Under the pieces are notes generated by a model. The model was given only the letters and a program-made list of their open reading frames with translations. It was not told where the DNA came from and made no database searches. Shown in pieces: positions 1,933 through 31,206 of a stretch of DNA of 64,000 bases. Location of the stretch: NCBI RefSeq assembly GCF_963676685.1, contig NC_092352.1, positions 1,922,001-1,986,000 of the forward strand. Reading direction: 5' to 3'. Position numbers and translations under genes: made by a program. How positions within the stretch are numbered: the stretch's first letter is position 1; the number at the start of each line of letters is the position of its first letter. This DNA comes from Mytilus edulis. Lineage: Eukaryota.

Positions 1933-4900
1933 TTGATAAAGCTAAATGCATGCATGAAGGGTGATATTCTTAAAATAATTTCTTATAATTGTCAAGGTCT
2001 TTATACAAAGGAGAAACGGAGAGATGTTTTGAACTATTTAAAGTCAAAGAATTTTAATATATACTGTCTTCAGGACACACATTTTACAGAACAAGATGAA
2101 TTAAACATTAAAAATCAGTGGAAGGGAGAATGCCTTTTCAATTCATTTACATCCAATCAGAGAGGTGTGGCCATCTTTTTTAATGAAAACTTTGATCTTC
2201 AAATTCACAAAGTTAAAAAAGATGAGGGGGGAAATCTTCTTGGATTGGACATTACAATTGAAGAACAAAGAATTACCTTAGTAAATATTTATGGGCCAAA
2301 TGTAGACACTCCTTGCTTTTATCAAAAGGTGGCAGACATTATTGAGGAATTTGATAACCAATCTTGTATTCTTTGTGGTGATTTTAACCTCATTCAAAGT
2401 TTTAATCTTGACACCCATAATTATGTTAATATCAACAACCCAAAGTCTAGAGAAAAAGTATTACAGCTAATGGAAGACTTTAATCTAGTTGATCCATTTA
2501 GAGAATTATACCCCAATTTGAAAAGATTTACTTGGAGGAAAAAAAAACCCTTTAAACAATCTCGTTTAGATTTTTTTCTGATTTCTGATAATATTTTTCA
2601 CTTTGTTAGCGATGTTAAAATTGATAATAGTTACAGGTCTGATCATTCACCTGTGGTCTTTTCTTTCAAGAATAATGAATTTATAAAAGGCAGAGGCCTT
2701 TTGAAGTTTAATAATTCCCTTCTTCATGATACTGACTATGTTAAAGAGATAAAAAACCTCATAAGTATAGTAAAAGAACAATATGCTGTCAAGATATATA
2801 GAGATGAAAATTTACAAAATATTGACAACTCTGAAATTGAATTTACTGTTGATGACCAGTTATTTTTAGAAACTTTACTCACAGAAATACGCGGTAAAAC
2901 TATTTCATATGCCTCTTATAAAAAAAAGGCGGGTATAAAAATTGAAAATGAAATTATTTCAAAATTAAAACAATTAGAAGAAAATGCTCTAACAGTAGAA
3001 AATCTGGAAGAGATTGATCAGAAAAAAGCAGAACTTAAAATTTATAGACAAAAGAAGGTTCAGGGACAATATGTTAGGTCAAGAAGTCAGTGGATTGAAG
3101 AAGGAGAAAAACCTACCAATTTTTTTTTAAATCTAGAGACTAGAAATTATATAAATAAGACTATTCAAAAACTGACTTTAGAAAATGGTGTTATAGTGGA
3201 AGAACAAAAAGAAATCTTAAATCAGACAAAGGTGTTTTATGAAAAACTTTATAGAAAACAAGATTGTTTGAAAAAGGTTGATTTAACATGGGACTTTTGT
3301 TATGACGAGATACCGAAGCTTAGCGAGGATGAAAAGCAGTTATTGGAGGGAAATATTATTTTTTCTGAATTAACTGCAGCATTAAAAAGGATGAAAAATA
3401 ACAAAAGTCCGGGGTCTGATGGTTTCACTGCAGAATTTTTCAAATTTTTTTGGATTGATATTGGTAAATTTGTCCTTAGATCTATAAATTTTGGATATGG
3501 GAAGGGCCAAATGTCTGTCACCCAGAGGCAGGGAGTGATTACATGTATTCCAAAAGATGGTAAACCAAAACAATTTCTTAAAAATTGGAGACCTATTACT
3601 CTACTAAATTCTACATATAAATTGGCATCAAGCTGTATAGCAGAGAGAATAAAATCTGTTTTGTCAAAATTAATAAGTTCGGATCAAACTGGTTTTGTTC
3701 CAGGTAGATATATAGGCGAAAATTGTCGTTTAATATATGATATTTTACATTTTACTGAAGAAAATAATATTCCAGGAATTCTCTTGCTGATTGATTTTGA
3801 GAAGGCATTCGATTCCATATCGTGGTCATTTCTTTATGATACATTAAGATATTTTAATTTTGGTGAATCCGTTATATCCTGGGTTAAAACCTTCTATAAC
3901 AATATAACAGCTGCGGTGACACAAAACTGTTGTTTGTCAGAATTCTTCACTATAGAGAGAGGCTGTAGACAGGGAGATCCTTTATCCCCTTATATTTTCT
4001 TGCTATGTGCAGAAATATTAGGCATTTTGGTAAGAAATAGTAGGGAGATAAAGGGTATTACTATAGATGATACAGAATTTGTACTTTCTCAATATGCGGA
4101 TGATACATCATTGATATTAGATGGCTCGCCAGAATCGCTCGATGCATCTCTTCGTGTTCTCTAATTGTATGCTGAAATCTCGGGACTTAAGATTAATATA
4201 GAAAAAACAAGTGTTATTTGGATAGGTAGCAAAAAACATAGTCAGGATCAAATTTGTGTAAAGTGGGGATTGAAATGGGGCTCCAGTACATTTAAGTTGC
4301 TTGGAATTACGTTTTCAGTCGACCTAGATAGAATGATTAATTTAAATTATAGGCCAGTTTTAGATAATATAGACAACACTTTGAAAAAATGGTCAAAACA
4401 GTATCTCACCCCCTTTGGAAAGATTACCATTTTAAAAACTTTGGTCATAGCTAAATTAAATCATCTGTTTCTATCTATCCCTAGTCCAGATGAGAATATG
4501 TTACGTAATTTAACAAATAAAATGTATGCTTTTATCTGGGATAATAAACCAGATAAGATCAAGCGAGATCTTTTATGTCAAGATTATTATAAGGGTGGTT
4601 TTAAAATGCTAAATTTAAAAGCTTTTATACAGGGACTAAAACTTACATGGGTAAGACGTCTGTATAATTCGAACTCAAAGTGGGTGAAATTAGTCTCTAT
4701 TGTGGAGCAAATAAATTTTATTGAAATAAGTTATATTGGGCCTATTAAAAGGTCAACAAATAAATTTTGGCAAGAGGTTTTTGATGCTTGGAAAACCCTT
4801 AATCAAATTAGAAAACCAAGATGTATTGATGAAATTCTATCGTATTCTTTATGGGAGGTAGAAAATTTTAAAATTGGTGGTTCAAGAGTCTACTATAAAA

Positions 4901-5736
4901 ACTGGGCAAATGCGGGAATTTGGACAGTACAAGATTTGTTAGATGACCAGGGCAAAGTTATGTCATTTCAAAATTTCCAACAATTATATCAATTTAGGCC
5001 AAATATTTTACATTATTATGGAATAGCGCACTCGCTTAATGAGTGGTTAAACACGATTAATATTGAAATAAATGAGAAAAAAATTCATGCAATACTACCT
5101 TTTAACATAAGTATCTTTTTTGAATCAAAAAAAGGTTCAAGGGAAATGTACAAAGTATTGAATGAAAAATATGTTACATTTGCTGCAAAGGAAAAATGGG
5201 AGAACCATCTTAATATGACTGGTATTAACTGGAAAAAAATACACACTTCGTGTACAAAATATAGTAAAAGCACTAAGCTTTGCTGGTTCCAATATAGAAC
5301 TATCCATAGAATTTTGGGAACTAATTCACTACTTTACAAGATGAAAATAAATAGCAGTAACATATGTACATTTTGTAAAGAAGGACCAGAGACCATAGAA
5401 CATTTATTTTGGAGCTGTCCGATGGTTGCCAGTCTCTGGCATGCACTTAACATCTGGATTTTTGAAATGACAAGTATTGAACTGCCTTTGAATATTATGA
5501 TTATTTTATTTGGTATCTACGAAAATGTTAAATTGAATTTTGTTAAAAATAAGATTATTCTACTTTCAAAATACTACATTTACAGAACAAAATTACAAGA
5601 AGTTTTGCCAAACCTAAATGCTTTAAAAAACTATTTAAAGGAACACTTGAACTTAGAAAAATACATTTCATTTAAAAACCTCTCTGTAGAGGAATATAAC
5701 AAATACTGGAGTCCCTGGGCCCCTATCATAGAATAA
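1933..5736 (+). pseudogene. L1/Tx1-clade LINE ORF2 (APE endonuclease + RT + C-terminal zinc-binding domain), broken by one in-frame TAA at 4162-4164
   Basis: APE motifs: SYNCQGL, LQDTH, NIYGPN, GDFN, SRLDFFL, SDH. RT motifs: KSPGSDG, NWRPITLLN, DFEKAFD, RGCRQGDPLSP, QYADD. Zinc motif: CTFC...ETIEHLFWSC. ORFs 1933-4164 and 4165-5736 are in the same frame and separated only by the stop codon. Confidence 0.95.
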
Positions 5737-5812
5737 ATAATAAATGTTAAAATTTGCTTGAAACACTACTTATGTATTTTGCAAGAACACATAAGATTTC
5801 AATGTTATATAT

Positions 5813-5972
5813 AGATTCTTACATTGTTAGCAGTGGATTATCGTGTTTCTCCAATCGAGATAGTTAAATTATGAAATTTTAAGTCTGAGCCTTGGCGAGG
5901 ACTTAAAATTTCATAATTTAACTATCGAGATTGGAGAAACACGATAATCCACTGCTAACAATGTAAGAATCT
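5813..5972. repeat. Long terminal hairpin of the Crypton (73-bp arms, 71/73 paired, 14-nt loop)
   Basis: Arms 5813-5885 and 5900-5972 are reverse complements except for one GA/GA dinucleotide. The loop is tgagccttggcgag. Confidence 0.95.
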
Positions 5973-6307
5973 GTTTCTCTAATGACCAAAAAACCTATTT
6001 TAGTTTCATAAAAAAATAAATTCTCCCAACCATGCCTTAAACTACGTCATCCGGTGTTACGCGCCAGCATATTTATACGCACATAAGTCTTTTGTTTAAT
6101 TTCAAGTATTATCTAAAAAAACCACAATCCAATTCAATTTGAATTCCAACATATTCATATTTAATCACAAAAAGAACATTAAAATAGTTTTTATCAATTG
6201 AACGTTGATAAGAAAAAAGAACTTTTTTCGCGTAGAATGAAGTTCACCGCTCACTGAAATAAACACGAGGAGAATGAATGAAGTTCAAAACGGCTGACCA
6301 CAGTAGT

Positions 6308-6760
6308 TTATTCATCTTGTGAACTGTCACTCTCGATAACAAATCGGCGTTTCTTCTGAGGAGGCTGAACTGATGGTGATGTATTGTTAATATTGATATT
6401 AAATGTCCCTCCATAAATAGGTGCCCCAAAGATATAGTTCATTCCTGAACGCGGTGCATCGTGACTTTGGCTTTGCCCAACCACGAGTTGTGTCTCTGTT
6501 TGATGAACTGCTTGACGTCCCATCGTAACCGTCCTCGTTGTCTGCGAAGACTGTATTTGTTGCTCATTTTCATCCTGGTTACCTAAGATGCATTGACGTC
6601 CCATCGTAACCGTCCTCGTTGTCTGTGAAGACTGTATTTGTTGTTCATTTTCAGCCTCATGATCCTGGTTACCTAAGATGCATTGGGCTATCTGTTTATG
6701 TTTCTGAGGGTTCAGTTTTGAGTAAGTGGTGATACTCTGTATGTTTTTGTGTCCAGATAT
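6308..6760 (-). CDS. Crypton tyrosine recombinase, exon 3 (GH and catalytic Y)
   Basis: Acceptor ttttttag|ATA TCT GGA CAC. It encodes ISGHKNIQSITTYSK..., a duplicated QCILGNQD...MGRQ segment, and a GAPIYGGTFNININ tail. The spliced CDS is 1222+143+453=1818 nt (605 aa) and open throughout. Confidence 0.88.
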   Translation of the reverse strand: MSGHKNIQSITTYSKLNPQKHKQIAQCILGNQDHEAENEQQIQSSQTTRTVTMGRQCILGNQDENEQQIQSSQTTRTVTMGRQAVHQTETQLVVGQSQSHDAPRSGMNYIFGAPIYGGTFNININNTSPSVQPPQKKRRFVIESDSSQDE

Positions 6761-7020
6761 CTAAAAAATCAGTAAAAAAATCATAAACTTTCTAGTATGA
6801 ACCATATGTGAATTTTTGTGAAATAGTGTGGATCTGAGGAAGAAGTAAAGGTGGACTAGAATTTAGAATTGTGAAATATTAAATAAGGGTGTCTCATTGA
6901 CAGATTGAGGGGTTCTGATCCTGGATCCAACTTACTGTTTTGTCAAATTCCTGTATCCGCTTACACTATGTATGTAACTTTGTAAGCAATTCTCATTTTT
7001 TGTAAATTCTTGTGTCCCCC

Positions 7021-7152
7021 CTAGTCCAAATAATTATGACGTCTCGTTAGGCTATTTTTTAATATTTTTTTTGGGACGCTGTACATTGATGTACGACGTC
7101 CAAAAAATTATAAAAAAATAGCCTTTCAAGACGTCATAATTATTTGGACTAG
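7021..7152. mobile_element. 132-bp palindromic MITE in Crypton intron 2
   Basis: TIR ctagtccaaataattatgacgtc / gacgtcataattatttggactag. The direct repeat tgtccccc lies at 7013-7020 and 7153-7160 (8 bp; 9/10 bp if the termini are TAG..CTA). Confidence 0.85.
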
Positions 7153-7299
7153 TGTCCCCCTAGACTTCCTAACACAGTACAGTACAATAATTTGACTAAC
7201 ATGTGTCATGCTCTCAAAGAGTTAGCAATTCAGGGTTGCACTTAGACCCTAATGAGATCCACAAATAAAAAATAAATAATCCGACAATTTTAAAAAGGA

Positions 7300-7663
7300 T
7301 TTCTTCAATTTTTGTGCTATTTTTACATTTCCTGACCGGTGTGAGAAAAAATATTTCTCCTCACTAGTGAAAAATCTGTTCTTGGCAAGTGATTGATTGA
7401 ATTTCAATGGTTCAAATTTTGCCGTTATATAGCCTTTTTGTGCTAATGCGGCGTCAGCTGTGTGGCGTAAAGCAACTAACAATGAATCAATGAATTTAAT
7501 CTTTGATAAAATTAGAGAAACAAATTCCACCGATATGTGTTTCCACTTTCAACAGTTAAATTTTTAATATTGAAAAGCTCAGCAAGCCTTGTGTTTTAAA
7601 TTGTAAAATTTAACGTTAACTGTCTCGAGTGGAGAATTTCGTAACACTCTGTGAAATCTATAT
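7300..7663 (+). mobile_element. Non-autonomous Crypton-related element, inverted relative to the autonomous copy
   Basis: The 5' part is the reverse complement of 11340-11430. It has an internal aaaattagagaaa, a hairpin with an agctcagcaagccttg loop, and ends in gaaatctata. Confidence 0.75.
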
Positions 7664-7796
7664 TTTCATATCTCCAGTTACAAAATTTTCTTATCAGATG
7701 ATTGTTCAAAATTCAATCATGACAAAAATTGAGTGGATGAAAACTGTAATTAATGTAGTCAAGTGGTGTTGTAGTAATATTTTTATGATTAATAAC

Positions 7797-7939
7797 CTGT
7801 TTGATACGATTATGTTCAATTCCCTCATCGTCAAGCTTCTGAAGCATAAACCTTCTAGCTGAATGGTTGGTTAGGCGCCTGTTTGTATTGTCATCTAGAG
7901 GTTGGTTCTCATCATTTTGATTGTGTTCTTTAATAATAC
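7797..7939 (-). CDS. Crypton tyrosine recombinase, exon 2 (HxxR motif)
   Basis: Boundaries ttgtag|GT ATT ... AAA CAG|gttatt; 143 nt, phase 1 to 0. It encodes ...RRLTNHSARRFMLQKLDDEGIEHNRIKQ and is absent from the ORF track. Confidence 0.88.
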
Positions 7940-8484
7940 CTACAAGTATATGTACAGTATTAATAATTAAAAGCAGTGATTAAAAGAACATGCTGGTTAT
8001 ACACATGTACAGTGTTTATATGGGGAAATTCAAATATGGTATCAAATTTTCTTGATTTCTTCTGAATTTCCTATTGTGACGTCATAAAAAAAGACAACCA
8101 TGATGACGTCACTTACATGTATGCCTTCAAATTGATATTTTATTGTGTGTTTTTCTATGTTGTGATGTTATACTATTCAGTTTTGTGTCAGTAAAAGGGA
8201 GAAGGTTTGGTACCATTAAAACATTTAATCCCTCTGCAAATGTTTGCACCTGTCCTAAGTCAGGAATCTGATGAACACAACAGTAGTTGTTGTTTGTTTA
8301 TGCAATTTATACATGTTGCTTGTTTCACTTGTTTTTATAAAAGACCATTGGTTTACCCGTTTGAATGAATTTACACTTTAAATTTGGGCTCTTTATAGCT
8401 TGTGTTATCCAAGGCTACATAATGAAGGCTGTACCTTGACCTGTAATGGTTTACTTTTATAAATTGTAATTGGATTGAGAGTTG

Positions 8485-8730
8485 TTTCTCTAGTTTTCGT
8501 GCTATTTTCACCTTTCTCGACCGGTGTGAGAAAAATATTTCTCGTCTCTAGAGAGAAATTTGTTCTTGTTCTCAGCAAATGATTGGTTGAATTTCAATTA
8601 TGACATCAATTTTTTTTGCTTTCTTCTGAATTTTCTATTGTGACATCAGGAAACTAGGTGAATTTAAAAATTTAACTGTTTGAGTGGAGAAATATTGTAA
8701 TACAGTCTTGATGCAGTTGTGAAATCTATA
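8485..8730 (+). mobile_element. Internally deleted non-autonomous Crypton-related element inserted in a common dispersed repeat
   Basis: It runs tttctctag...gaaatctata. Removing it restores gagagttg+tctcattggcactcat, seen uninterrupted at about 34931 (agagttgtctcattggcactcat). Confidence 0.8.
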
Positions 8731-8821
8731 TCTCATTGGCACTCATACCATATCTTCCTATGCATGTACATTGTACCAATAAAGAGCACAACTTTCAGCA
8801 AATCTCTCAAAAGGAATATCT

Positions 8822-8937
8822 CGTGTATTATATTTCTCCAGTCTTGACAGTTAAATTTTAAATATATTCAAAATCTTGGCACGCCTTGCATTTTAAATTT
8901 TAAAATTTAACTGTCTCTCGTGGAGAAATATAACACG
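8822..8937. repeat. Isolated degraded copy of the Crypton-type hairpin
   Basis: The sequence reads gtgtattatatttctccagtcttgacagttaaatttt ... aaaatttaactgtctctcgtggagaaatataacac. Confidence 0.7.
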
Positions 8938-9188
8938 TAATATGTGTCTTTGTGGCATGTACAAATGTTTTATGCTTGCGTTAAAACTAACATGTAATCT
9001 TTTTTTTTAGGTTAAAGAATAGAGTTTATTTTGGATTTTTATCAACCTTAAACAAAATTTTAAGACGGCAGGGTTGATGAATTTTCTGGATATATCGAGA
9101 ATTTTTTATAAAAAAAGGGGGGAAACATATCAACCAAAGTATTGAGTATTTGACACAGATTATTCTACATGTACATGTATTTAAACTA

Positions 9189-9260
9189 TCCTTGTTAGTA
9201 CAATGGTCAGTACACTCATCTACAGATGAGGGATCTGGGTTCGATTCCTGGACTTGGAGT
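9189..9260 (+). pseudogene. tRNA-derived (SINE-head-like) degenerate sequence
   Basis: It has an A-box-like tagtacaatggt, a stem ctcat/atgag, and a B-box ggttcgattcc. The anticodon loop is irregular. Confidence 0.4.
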
Positions 9261-9539
9261 TTACATGTAGAGTCAAAATGTGTCTATTTACTCTTGCTTA
9301 AATTTGAATAAAAATGTACAAGTAACTTAATTTGACCATTGTTGAAATTTTAATTATCAACATGTTGTTCACAGTTCTACCTTCATATTGGTAAATACTC
9401 AATGATGACTTTCATTTTTTTTTTAATTTCAAAACTAAACTGATTTATAAAAGAAACAGATTAAACAGTTATCTGTCACTGTTGACAAATAGGTTTCTCA
9501 AATCTTTCTCCAATCAATGAATTTGGGAAAACCTGCACA

Positions 9540-9930
9540 TTTCTTGAGTGGTGTGAGTAAACTATTTTTCACCACTAGTAAAATATCTGTTCTAAATCAA
9601 AATTGATTATGACGTCATCATGTTTTGTTTTTTTCAGAATTTTCATATTGTGACGTGGGGGAAAAAAGGCGACCTTGCCTGATGACATTGCATATATTAA
9701 AGGAACACAAGTTTCTAAAAATCTTTGAAAAAGAATGATACAAATCATTAAACAAACTAATTTCGACACTATAAGTTATAACTCGTGTATTACAATATTT
9801 CTCCACTCTCGACAGTTAAATTTAATTATTTAAAAAGCTCGGCAAGCCTCGCTCTTTAAATAATAAAATTTAACTGTCTCGAGTGGAGAAATATTGTAAT
9901 ACACTTGTTGCAGTGTATGAATCAATATAT
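9540..9930 (+). mobile_element. Non-autonomous Crypton-related element with a well-preserved hairpin (9785-9904) in intron 1
   Basis: The motif ggtgtgag...tttttcaccactagt is shared with the 7340 and 8522 copies. The hairpin loop is agctcggcaagcctcgct. Confidence 0.75.
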
Positions 9931-9974
9931 ACATTAATAACAAGTAAATGTACCTGTTTACAATATTTTATTAC

Positions 9975-11196
9975 CTGTATTTAAAGCCATTTTCTTCATG
10001 AATTTTCCTAATTTATTGATACCAATTCTTTGTGCCTTAAACCAAAGGGCTGACTTGTCAGGGTTGTTGTTCTCCTGAATGTAGAAGGGATCTTCAGGCT
10101 TACTATATTTTGTAGGTCTTTTTGACTTGTAAAGCTTGTATGCAGCTACAGGACATTTTGTTTGATCAGTTGTGGCCCAGGCCCTTTGAGGAATTTCTCT
10201 TGTGTTTTTCAGATTTGCTCCAGTTCTTGTTTTAGTATTTCTCTCGTTCATTTGCAAGTATTCCTGACTTTTAGAGTCTTTACATAGTTGGACATCCCCC
10301 CATGTCATCTGATAATGTTCAGTTACACCACGTAGGCCAAAATATATTGTGTTAAAAAACCAGAGAGTGTGCAATAGAGTTGTAGGATTGGACAAGCCCA
10401 GCTGCCCAGTTTTAAACATTGCTTCAATGTCATCATCAGTGAGTGTTTCAGCTCTTTTATCACCATTTCCTTTACCCATTTTTTTTAACGCTATCTGTTT
10501 TGCCGTAAGAACATCTCTGGTTTTAGCAAATTCTACACTTTTACTTAATTCATAGCCATAATCATTGCTCCTCAGTATTCTATCAAATGAACACATCATT
10601 CCACGTAGTGAGGATGGCTCATACTCTTCTCCATCAGTTTTTCTCACAGAGAAAAAGTACTGACATAAAAGACTGTTTAATTCTTCAGGTGGAATTTTAT
10701 AAATTTCTCTTTTTTCATTTTTCTGTTGTAGGAACTGTGTAAGTGTGCGCATATCACTTATATTTTTTCTGGCAGTGCCTTGATTTTCCTGATCTTTAAC
10801 AAATTGTTCTACAGTTGATTCATCAACTGGAACAAACTGTCTTGGTTTTGATGCTTTTGAACTAGGCTTTTGTGTAGGTGCTTGAGGTGGTGCTGACACA
10901 TTTACAGGAGCTTCATTTGGCGTTTTATCAACTTCATTCAACTCTGGCTCAAACAGATACAGGAGTCCATCAGGAACATGTGGTGGGGAGTCATGTTCTA
11001 ATGGGTGTGTGACTGTTCTGTCAGGCTCAGAAATAATGTCAAACCTGTATCTGGCCTCAGTTACAAGTTTACCACCTTCTAGCTGAATTTCCCACAACGG
11101 AAACCCAAAGTTGTCTGTTTTACCTTTTATAACTCCCATTTGCCCCCCTACAAGTCTGACTTTTTGTCCCCTTGTCAAGTTTTCGTTGAGCGACAT
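9975..11196 (-). CDS. Crypton tyrosine recombinase, exon 1
   Basis: DUF3504/ZMYM/KCTD1-like motifs: RKTDGEEYEPSSL, FGLRGVTEH (catalytic R), ERNTKTRTG, KCPVAAYKLYKSKRP, WFKAQRIGINKL. The exon ends at ACA G|gtaata (phase 1). Confidence 0.9.
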
Positions 11197-11430
11197 TTCT
11201 TTCTTATAATGAAAATTGCAGACGACGAGTTCTCGATAGTTTGTTTACACGTTACTAAGATGTTTATCGAAGAAGGCCGAGAATTCTTGTTAACCTTGAA
11301 AAAGTAGTTCCGACAGGTCACGAACTTTGATTATCCAATCAATTGCTGAGAACAAATTTCTCTCTAGAGACGAGAAATATTTTTCTCACACCGGTTGAGA
11401 AGTGTGAAAATAGCTCGAAAATTAGAGAAA

Positions 11431-11608
11431 AGATATTTATTGATTTTCAACCTATTATAGCACCATCATATTTATTCAATTGTTGTTTTATTATTTAATA
11501 CTTCCTTTGTGTGAAAATGTCATTCTGTATACCTTTGTTCATACATGTTGTGCTAATCTATTTGTTACAATAAAGAAAATTCATTATAAAAAACAAAAAA
11601 CAAAAGAA
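11431..11608 (+). mobile_element. Probable displaced 3' UTR and A-rich tail of the first L1, split off by the Crypton insertion
   Basis: aataaa at about 11569 is followed by an A-rich tail (aaaaaacaaaaaacaaaag). ORF2 at 5736 has no such tail before the Crypton starts at 5810. Confidence 0.55.
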
Positions 11609-30463: not shown

Positions 30464-31206
30464 TATAGTTTATCGTTGATCATCTCAACAAGATTGATAT
30501 TCTCACTTGAGCCGGGACGGCAAAAGCGATGAAAGGCAATCGAGTTGAGATGATCAATGATAATATGTTTATCGCTATTTTACCTATGACAACGTTGTCA
30601 ATTTCATGACAATTTCGTTAGCAACGCCACGTGCCTGTTTAGTTTCTAGCAATAATTTTCCATCTCAAGTGAGAAGCATGATATGAAAATTATCACAAAA
30701 CAAGAATGTGTCCATAGTACACGGATGCCCCACTCGCACTATCATTTTCTATGTTCAGTGGACTGTGAAATTGGGGTCAAAATTATAATTTGGAATTATA
30801 ATTAGAAAGATCATATCATAGGGAACATGTGTACTAAGTTTCAAGTTGATGTAACTTTAACTTCATCAAAAACTACCTTGACCAAAAACTTTAACCTGAA
30901 CTTCGCACTATCATTTTCTATGTTCAGTGGACCATGAAATTGGGGTCAAAACTAGAATTTGGCATTAAAATTAGAAAGATCATATCATGGGGAACATGTG
31001 CACTAAGTTTAAAGTTGATTGGACTTCAACTTCTTCAAAAACTACCTTGACCAAAAACTTTAACCTGAAGCAAACGGACGCACAGACGGACGCACAGACA
31101 GACGGACGAACGAACGGAGGCACAGACCAGAAAACATAATGCCCCTCTACTATCGTAGGTGGGGCATAAAAAAGATCAAAGGAAAAATGCACAAAATAGC
31201 GATAAA
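30464..31206. mobile_element. Second non-autonomous Crypton-type family, split by a Helentron-like insertion
   Basis: It starts with tatag and has a hairpin at about 30470-30563 with a gagccg..cggc loop. Internal tttatcgctatttt (30568-30581) is the exact inverse of terminal aaaatagcgataaa (31193-31206). Confidence 0.75.
30697..31172. mobile_element. Helentron/HINE-like element
   Basis: It runs aaacaagaatgtgtcc..gtacacggatgcccc, two internal units, (GACG/GAAC)n, and the palindrome atgcccctctactatcgtaggtggggcat. It is inserted in an A-run. Confidence 0.8.

Follow-up and report, generated by a model that had tools for sequence, protein, structure and literature searches.

Integron cassettes carry a site whose full form exists only after joining: the first bases of the cassette complement the bases just upstream of an imperfect palindrome. 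The attC stems so formed have conserved irregularities, and cassettes insert without duplication. Among eukaryotic transposons, an asymmetric or subterminal inverted repeat combined with a 3′ hairpin is known for Helitron2, Helentron and HINE elements, which are moved by an HUH Rep/helicase (PMC3627910, PMC4067079) and whose autonomous Rep/helicase partners have ends that are 98% identical in flies and more than 95% identical in Culex (PMC4067079). In published descriptions, animal Cryptons lack both direct and inverted terminal repeats (PMC3212892), and the repeats of CryptonA elements are variable or undescribed (June 2026 Glomhopper paper, PMC13465315). Here we analyse a window of 64,000 nucleotides from Mytilus edulis (contig NC_092352.1, positions 1,922,001 to 1,986,000; C9:1922001-1986000 in the 1.37-Gb assembly that served for genome searches). 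The window contains an autonomous CryptonA-type DNA transposon of Mytilus with a DUF3504-type tyrosine recombinase (YR) as its only enzyme. What is new is a CryptonA element with a defined, conserved end consisting of a hairpin and an asymmetric repeat. On balance we favour the reading that its YR recognises this composite end site as a folded strand or extruded cruciform and would exchange strands at a single shared T.

The element is present in at least six copies of 5.5–5.9 kb, at about 99% identity, which have identical sharp ends on both sides and unrelated flanks. Read along the sense strand, the unit runs (T)TTCTCTAAT ... GAATCTATA(T), and its parts are given in Table 1. The window copy sits within the 3′ end of a repeat resembling a long interspersed nuclear element (LINE). 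More than ten uninterrupted paralogues of this LINE read ...caatgttat-aagatattt..., whereas the occupied site reads ...caatgttat/ATATAG...GAGAAA/agatattt (slashes at the boundaries). Comparison of the empty and occupied sites therefore places the insertion precisely, with no target-site duplication and one ambiguous base: the left boundary falls at 5809 or 5810, a single sense-strand T being common to element and target. There are no long terminal repeats (LTRs) and no symmetric terminal inverted repeats. Twenty-four complete short copies have the same ends and likewise lack a target-site duplication. The DNA around them is AT-rich and not oligo-T; it is often (TA)n, and in about half of these copies ATA follows on the 3′ side. 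A 17-mer running across the 3′ repeat, the C and the start of the hairpin occurs 1165 times in the genome, compared with 0 occurrences for the reversed control. Because this motif is so abundant and the six or more long copies share sharp ends in different flanks, the layout is far beyond chance.

The insertion target itself (window 4165-5808 and 11431-11560) is a LINE-like 3′ end whose open reading frame (ORF) carries a zf-RVT domain. The genome contains at least 40 copies of it at 94–98% identity, and these are the source of the paralogous empty sites. A loose end at 5809 in run X1 was considered as an empty allele and rejected, as it derives from a paralogous LINE copy.

Table 1. Features of the Crypton element, of the copies nested in it and of a second hairpin-ended family (window coordinates)
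Feature	Position	Strand	Remarks
Whole autonomous element	5809..11430	minus (sense)	5,622 bp; about 99%-identical copies with the same ends; paralogous empty site
5′ terminal inverted repeat	11421..11430	minus	sense TTTCTCTAAT, plus strand ATTAGAGAAA; flanks diverge directly outside
5′ non-coding region	11197..11420	minus	RNA contig begins at 11378
Recombinase exon 1	9975..11196	minus	QRICH1-like N-domain; DUF3504 (Pfam 8e-29); catalytic Arg in FGLRG
Recombinase exon 2	7797..7939	minus	HSARR box; translation and spliced RNA contigs
Recombinase exon 3	6308..6760	minus	GHK...Y catalytic tyrosine (in SITTY); conserved C-terminal tail
3′ subterminal inverted repeat	5974..5983	minus	sense ATTAGAGAAA, plus strand TTTCTCTAAT; complementary to the 5′ end
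Single spacer base	5973	minus	C on sense (G on plus), between 3′ repeat and palindrome
Palindrome	5813..5972	none	160 nt: 73-nt arms, 14-nt loop, one invariant tandem mismatch
3′ tail ATA(T)	5809..5812	minus	downstream of the palindrome; 3′ terminus of the element
Nested non-autonomous copy A	7300..7663	plus	intron 2; antisense to the gene; complete layout
Nested non-autonomous copy B	8485..8731	plus	intron 1; half of the hairpin deleted
Hairpin remnant	8810-8951		separate from copy B
Nested degraded non-autonomous copy C	9494..9928	plus	intron 1; ends 30 bp from the pseudo-stop of the exon-1 ORF
Family 2	30464..31206	minus	14-nt repeat pair, C, hairpin of about 100 nt, ATA

The recombinase is intact, expressed and spliced. 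Its three exons, joined in a script, give 605 open codons with one terminal stop. Exon 1 lies within a 412-codon ORF (9958-11196, minus strand) that comprises the DUF3504 and QRICH1-type domains, and the RefSeq protein model P0001 (Mytilus galloprovincialis), which is 100% identical to exon 1, is the protein used for alignment. Across the 16 aligned sequences R270, H-x-x-R (S415/R417), H440 and Y449 are invariant. The splice 6760^7797 is present in RNA contigs from two studies, which confirms splicing of intron 2, and an exon-1 RNA contig spans 9972-11378, its start lying 52 nt in from the 5′ terminus. In X15 and X19 the spliced RNA contigs extend over 7797-7941; they run two bases past exon 2 because the last AG of the intron is the same as the last AG of exon 1. 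A tandem duplication of 81 bp within exon 3 (window 6512-6685), which repeats a 27-residue peptide in frame, is also found in P0001.

A second autonomous family (L081, chromosome 4) shares its three-exon gene layout, its 10-nt repeats and its C spacer with the window element, and the palindromes of the two are similar. Its exon 1 is 62% identical to that of the window element, with a nonsynonymous divergence (dN) of 0.29, a synonymous divergence (dS) of 2.3 and a dN/dS of 0.12, and by this ratio the recombinase is judged to be under purifying selection. The 5′ non-coding region is about 85% conserved between the two families, as estimated by eye, despite a dS above 2. The ORF lists of 5800-11500, three of whose ORFs were scanned against Pfam, show no other enzyme and, specifically, no reverse transcriptase, DDE transposase or Rep/helicase: beside the recombinase exons they hold only short ORFs in nested repeats. 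The element thereby resembles CryptonA (Kojima and Jurka 2011, PMC3212892; PMC13465315), where a DUF3504-type YR with a catalytic tetrad is the only enzyme, where LTRs, a DDE enzyme and target-site duplications are lacking, and where non-autonomous derivatives far outnumber autonomous copies. It differs from published animal Cryptons, which are described as lacking terminal repeats, in that the ends of this element and its relatives are defined by an asymmetric inverted repeat of 10–25 nt and a 3′ palindrome of 80–160 nt.

The arms of this palindrome (5813-5885 and 5900-5972) are 97% complementary, and the 3′ region, folded as single-stranded DNA, reaches −75.7 kcal/mol (z = −22.7 against 200 shuffles). 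We compared 31 distinct Mytilus hairpins from three subfamilies, about 72% identical between types. In this set 88.8% of cells are paired, compared with 34–44% for shifted partners, and both sides have changed in 27 of the 73 pairs. RNAalifold, run on 15 of the 31 hairpins, returned 62 pairs, of which 23 are compensatory. A single tandem mismatch stays open throughout the Mytilus set: CTCG stands on both sense-strand arms, between covarying neighbours, and gives T.C/C.T on the sense strand and G.A/A.G on the other strand. A 2x2 loop at C-NN-G also occurs in the second hairpin-ended family of the window and in L084, L106, L116, L118, L129 and L131, which belong to the relatives described below. 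A mismatch of this sort would be lost if the palindrome were homogenised, so the simpler reading is that a specific irregular stem is under selection; two oriented duplex binding motifs are a possible alternative explanation of the mismatch.

A palindrome of this kind might serve another step of the life cycle, such as self-primed second-strand synthesis of a single-stranded intermediate or an RNA signal, with the recombination site consisting of the short terminal motifs only. With 4 nt between the palindrome and the 3′ end, a fold-back there could prime synthesis, and the conserved terminal motifs (5′ TTTAT/TTTCT, 3′ TCTATA(T)) could suffice to define cleavage. However, RNA depth is about 1 over the palindrome compared with 13–50 over the exons, so the hairpin is not part of the mRNA and an RNA role is unlikely. 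Priming alone would also leave unexplained why the repeat abuts the palindrome with a conserved one-base spacer. We consider this explanation very improbable, and the least likely of the alternatives weighed here.

When the element ends are joined in silico, the 10-bp repeat lengthens the stem and 1 nt comes to lie opposite 4 nt at the junction. The site is continuous only once the ends meet, the outer arms of the palindrome being split between the two linear ends. The corresponding head-to-tail junction, AGAATCTATA-T-TTCTCTAAT, has 10 exact occurrences in the genome and one variant with one T fewer, compared with 0 for the control, and one of them, on chromosome 1, joins two short copies in a genuine tandem. 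An earlier reading of the window, made from the sequence only, had placed the hairpin arms, the G and the 10-bp inverted repeats exactly where we find them and had predicted the 10-bp extension of the stem, together with a junction of ATTAGAGAAA followed by TATAGATTC on the plus strand, which is the one found in the genome. It had also recognised the same layout, inverted, at 7300-7663. Its identification of a Crypton-type element is borne out by the intact and expressed recombinase, the boundaries are fixed and free of target-site duplication, apart from the one-base ambiguity at the left end, and the stem covariation that it proposed to check is strong both within and between families.

The joined site may have a further role. 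In the second autonomous copy (L081 4787-4962; G000:C4:86921398-86921417) the right side adjoins a C and another hairpin, and the 3′ end adjoins ...TTCTCTAAT, which makes up one of the head-to-tail junctions counted above. This L081-type copy appears to have split a resident short copy precisely where its 3′ repeat meets its C-hairpin, a place whose sequence resembles the joined site. Insertions favour AT-rich DNA and, if this reading holds, such look-alikes of the joined ends, the element's own end then being a preferred target. The pattern AGAATCTGTTTCTCTAATT, tried as a counter of insertions into resident copies, was rejected as unspecific, since members of the L081-type family match it on their ordinary inner side too.

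The same junction can be read as a duplex. The core site would then be the double-stranded circle junction, made up of an arm from the element end, a spacer of 4–6 bp and the first bases of the palindrome, and the long palindrome would be accessory, for example a binding platform or a second-strand priming site. In the second family of the window, joining the ends would place perfectly inverted 7-bp repeats on the two sides of a 5-nt spacer (CGATAAA / TATAG / TTTATCG). The palindrome base TCTTACAT...ATGTAAGA is kept between Mytilus and L084/L106, as a protein-binding arm would be, and fungal Cryptons, with their direct repeats of 4–6 bp, fit the duplex model (PMC3212892, PMC13465315). In the family of the window element, however, the would-be arms match at only 6 of 10 positions. 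Two-strand exchange should moreover leave spacer-length direct repeats at both ends, yet the direct repeats of the fungal model are absent from the empty site, the 24 short copies and the junctions, where a single T is shared. The covariation, too, runs along all 73 stem positions, far past a binding arm. We regard duplex recombination as unlikely, though it remains a contender to be taken seriously.

Evidence on whether the ends belong to the recombinase comes from other hosts. A metagenome scan with a recombinase profile yielded 80 loci, whose YRs are 33–47% identical to that of the mussel; they were assigned to a bivalve or a cnidarian type by their closest proteins, which are bivalve (Mercenaria, Saccostrea) or anthozoan (Paramuricea, Actinia, Oculina; mostly 55–80%). 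A blind script searched downstream of each ORF for a hairpin directly preceded by sequence that complements DNA ahead of the ORF. It returned five matches of at least 10 nt, compared with 0 in the reversed control, and a looser scan returned 11 loci compared with 2. Inspection revealed one conserved architecture in at least 20 5′ ends and at least 20 3′ ends flanking YR ORFs. The 5′ end reads TTTAT...GTACTGAGATTT and lies 170–360 nt ahead of the ORF match. The 3′ end consists of the complement of the 5′ repeat, ending ...ATAAA-C, then a palindrome of 80–160 nt and AATCT(C)TATA(T), a 3′ motif shared with Mytilus. Eleven loci show both ends, and the two repeats of a pair change together from family to family. 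The C spacer is retained in all Mytilus subfamilies and in most cnidarian-type families, and the bivalve-type loci L084 and L106 have the palindrome base in common with Mytilus. L106 also holds the joined form: hairpin, TCTA, then the 5′ end of an adjoining short copy. The two elements at L106 2250-2724 form a head-to-tail pair in a different host: the hairpin of an autonomous element runs through TCTA straight into TTTATC..., the start of a short non-autonomous copy that has a hairpin as well.

Because the end motifs follow the recombinase across phyla, the ends belong to it, and a reading in which the recombinase is a cargo gene is hard to reconcile with them. Under that reading these would be rolling-circle ends of the Helentron or HINE type, served in trans by a mussel Rep/helicase. 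The layout is indeed equal to that of Helitron2, Helentron and HINE elements (DINE-1, Cg_HINE, pearl/MgE): a 5′ T, a 5′ repeat at the tip, a 3′ repeat just upstream of the 3′ hairpin, no duplication, tandem head-to-tail copies and abundant short derivatives (PMC3627910, PMC4067079, PMC7492417). At least 150 Rep/helicase loci with long open frames are present in the genome. Against this, the place and orientation of the recombinase are fixed in every autonomous copy examined, with its start about 170–360 nt from the 5′ end (Mytilus and cnidarian-type), and the recombinase is under purifying selection. Autonomous mussel copies encode a YR and not an HUH Rep/helicase/endonuclease; there is no Rep/helicase in the element, and on chromosome 1 the 13 Rep/helicase loci all lie more than 30 kb away from the 83 end junctions listed for it. 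Helitron2 and Helentron hairpins have stems of 5–10 bp placed 8–35 bp from the end, whereas the palindromes here are 80–160 nt long, and that of the mussel element has 73-bp arms, ten times longer, 4 nt from the tip. The target, finally, is AT-rich (ATA) rather than oligo-T. Taken together, we give the cargo explanation little credence. As to the Helitron-like Rep loci themselves, many lie inside open frames of 2000–3200 codons, and apparently intact Helentron-type elements therefore coexist with Cryptons in this genome.

Given these properties, we return to recognition of a folded composite site by the YR. The cis-acting ends would comprise the 10-nt terminal repeat, its inverted copy, the one-base spacer, the 160-nt palindrome and the 4-nt tail. 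When the ends meet, in a circle or by intrastrand pairing, the terminal repeat would pair with its inverted copy and stack on the palindrome. The product would be a single long stem with imperfections, and its point of irregularity, where 1 nt faces 4 nt, would coincide exactly with the element boundary. Strand exchange would occur at the single T common to ...CTATA and TTCTC..., and integration at a T in AT-rich DNA. One strand would be exchanged and the product fixed by replication, as for integron cassettes and CTXphi; the lack of spacer-length direct repeats is consistent with one-strand exchange but no proof of it. More speculatively, an integrated element in a single strand could form the same structure, with its flanks leaving at the irregular point, and be excised as a single-stranded circle. 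Folded-strand recombination in the mussel Crypton is thus plausible; the folded state as the recognised form, the one-strand exchange resolved by replication and the circular intermediate are what we infer from the architecture.

Several points weigh against this proposal. Tyrosine recombinases normally act on duplex core sites. Covariation in a palindrome can arise if both arms are duplex binding sites, or by template switching. The tandem mismatch is not universal: the stem is fully paired there in L138 and L142, and in L085 the sense strand carries GA/GA, the form otherwise found on the opposite strand. No circle joint, excision footprint or polymorphic empty allele was listed in four runs, three of which are assembled contigs, so that this is no evidence of absence. 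The same geometry, moreover, serves HUH Rep/helicase elements elsewhere (PMC3627910, PMC4067079), and loci of that kind number at least 150 in this genome.

The comparison with known folded sites has points of likeness and of difference. As in the attC/IntI system of integrons, the site of the mussel element is split and would be rejoined on circularisation, the stem is irregular and there is no duplication. Unlike the mussel element, attC/IntI is bacterial, has its crossover between G and TT, an attC of 60–140 nt and a dedicated attI partner, and uses a distant recombinase family; use of the folded bottom strand is proven by experiment for attC, whereas we infer it for the mussel Crypton. CTXphi attP with XerCD and the TnpA transposases of IS200/IS605 are alike in that folded single-stranded DNA creates or presents the site and subterminal hairpins mark the ends. 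They differ in that CTXphi relies on the host Xer recombinases acting on a phage genome, while in IS200/IS605 the enzyme is of the HUH Y1 type and each end carries a short hairpin; neither combines the split repeat-plus-palindrome geometry with an element-encoded eukaryotic tyrosine recombinase. The sequence-only reading had likened the ends to an attC-type composite site. Its split-arm geometry stands, but the same geometry in Helitron2, Helentron and HINE elements had been missed. That it knew of no such mechanism described for eukaryotic Cryptons agrees with our literature search, in which full-text queries on Crypton with hairpin, stem-loop or subterminal inverted repeats, or on tyrosine recombinase with Helentron, gave nothing relevant, Repbase lying outside the search.

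The window contains a second hairpin-ended family, family 2, whose 14-nt repeat pair (30568-30581 and 31193-31206) flanks its hairpin. Its interior consists of two tandem units of about 180 bp and a GTCY-type / (GACG/GACA)n microsatellite (window 30700-31176). In this it looks like the published bivalve HINE layout, which it resembles in the tandem repeats and the GTCY microsatellite as well as in its ends. The oyster Cg_HINE plan runs 5′ repeat, GTCY microsatellite, tandem repeats of about 180 bp, 3′ repeat and palindrome, and the oyster study found no autonomous Helentron partner for Cg_HINEs (PMC7492417). Family 2 and the recombinase-bearing elements have in common the TTTATC start, ATAAA-C, the CAAC-TC-G loop and the CTATA end. 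None of the 32 genomic matches of the family 2 18-mer lies within 90 kb of a recombinase or Rep locus, and the 5′ 87 nt, whose matches are mostly to an unrelated dispersed 57-nt repeat, gave no link to an enzyme either. Of the earlier claims about this family, the 14-nt pair and the layout are confirmed. It does not provide independent support for a YR mechanism, since no recombinase link was found. The 57-nt segment itself (31120-31176), which has a tRNA-like look, has more than 1400 candidate genomic matches, independent of the family 2 ends.

A broader form of our proposal would be that CryptonA YRs recombine an attC-like folded site from both ends by one-strand exchange at the shared T, with the corollary that at least part of the abundant hairpin-ended HINE, pearl and MgE repeats of bivalves, which have been left without an autonomous Helentron partner, are non-autonomous Cryptons and not rolling-circle elements. 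We put this forward tentatively and think it rather more doubtful than probable.

The introns of the recombinase gene contain three antisense non-autonomous copies, A, B and C, together with unrelated high-copy repeats. Copy A begins with TTTCTTCAAT at 7300 and has ATTAGAGAAA at 7511-7520, followed by C, the hairpin and ATAT ending at 7663. A match to copy B is listed in every full-length copy examined, and the composite has therefore moved as a unit. The hairpins at 8810-8951 and 9780-9931 were considered as alternative 3′ ends of a shorter element. This was rejected because the ORF stop at 9958 lies just inside the intron and because splicing of intron 2 is confirmed.

Two other regions of the introns stand out by their contig depth. 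Intron 2 holds a separate palindrome (window 7021-7152) with 51-nt arms that are 90% complementary. Contig depth there is 40,000–68,000, more than 100 times that of the element body (about 250), and this palindrome therefore belongs to a different, very high-copy foldback or MITE (miniature inverted-repeat transposable element) family. In intron 1, window 8040-8820 shows a contig depth of 50,000–190,000, with many variant joints and RNA on both strands, a signal that comes from unrelated, very abundant repeats in and around copy B.

No class of eukaryotic DNA transposons is understood less well than animal Cryptons, whose reportedly featureless ends have blocked annotation, the detection of derivatives and mechanistic work. 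The mussel family provides base-exact ends, a junction sequence, more than 1000 derivatives and an architecture common to mollusc-type and cnidarian-type elements, which is the architecture used by recombination systems that act on single strands (integron attC, Helitron2). If our reading is true, this would be, to our knowledge, the first eukaryotic tyrosine recombinase that uses a folded site, and the classification of hairpin-ended repeats, which account for a large part of bivalve genome sequence and contain satellite-like arrays, would change. The recombinase fold has been domesticated in the DUF3504 proteins of the ZMYM2/3/4, QRICH1 and KCTD1 type, and a preference for structured DNA could bear on what these proteins bind.

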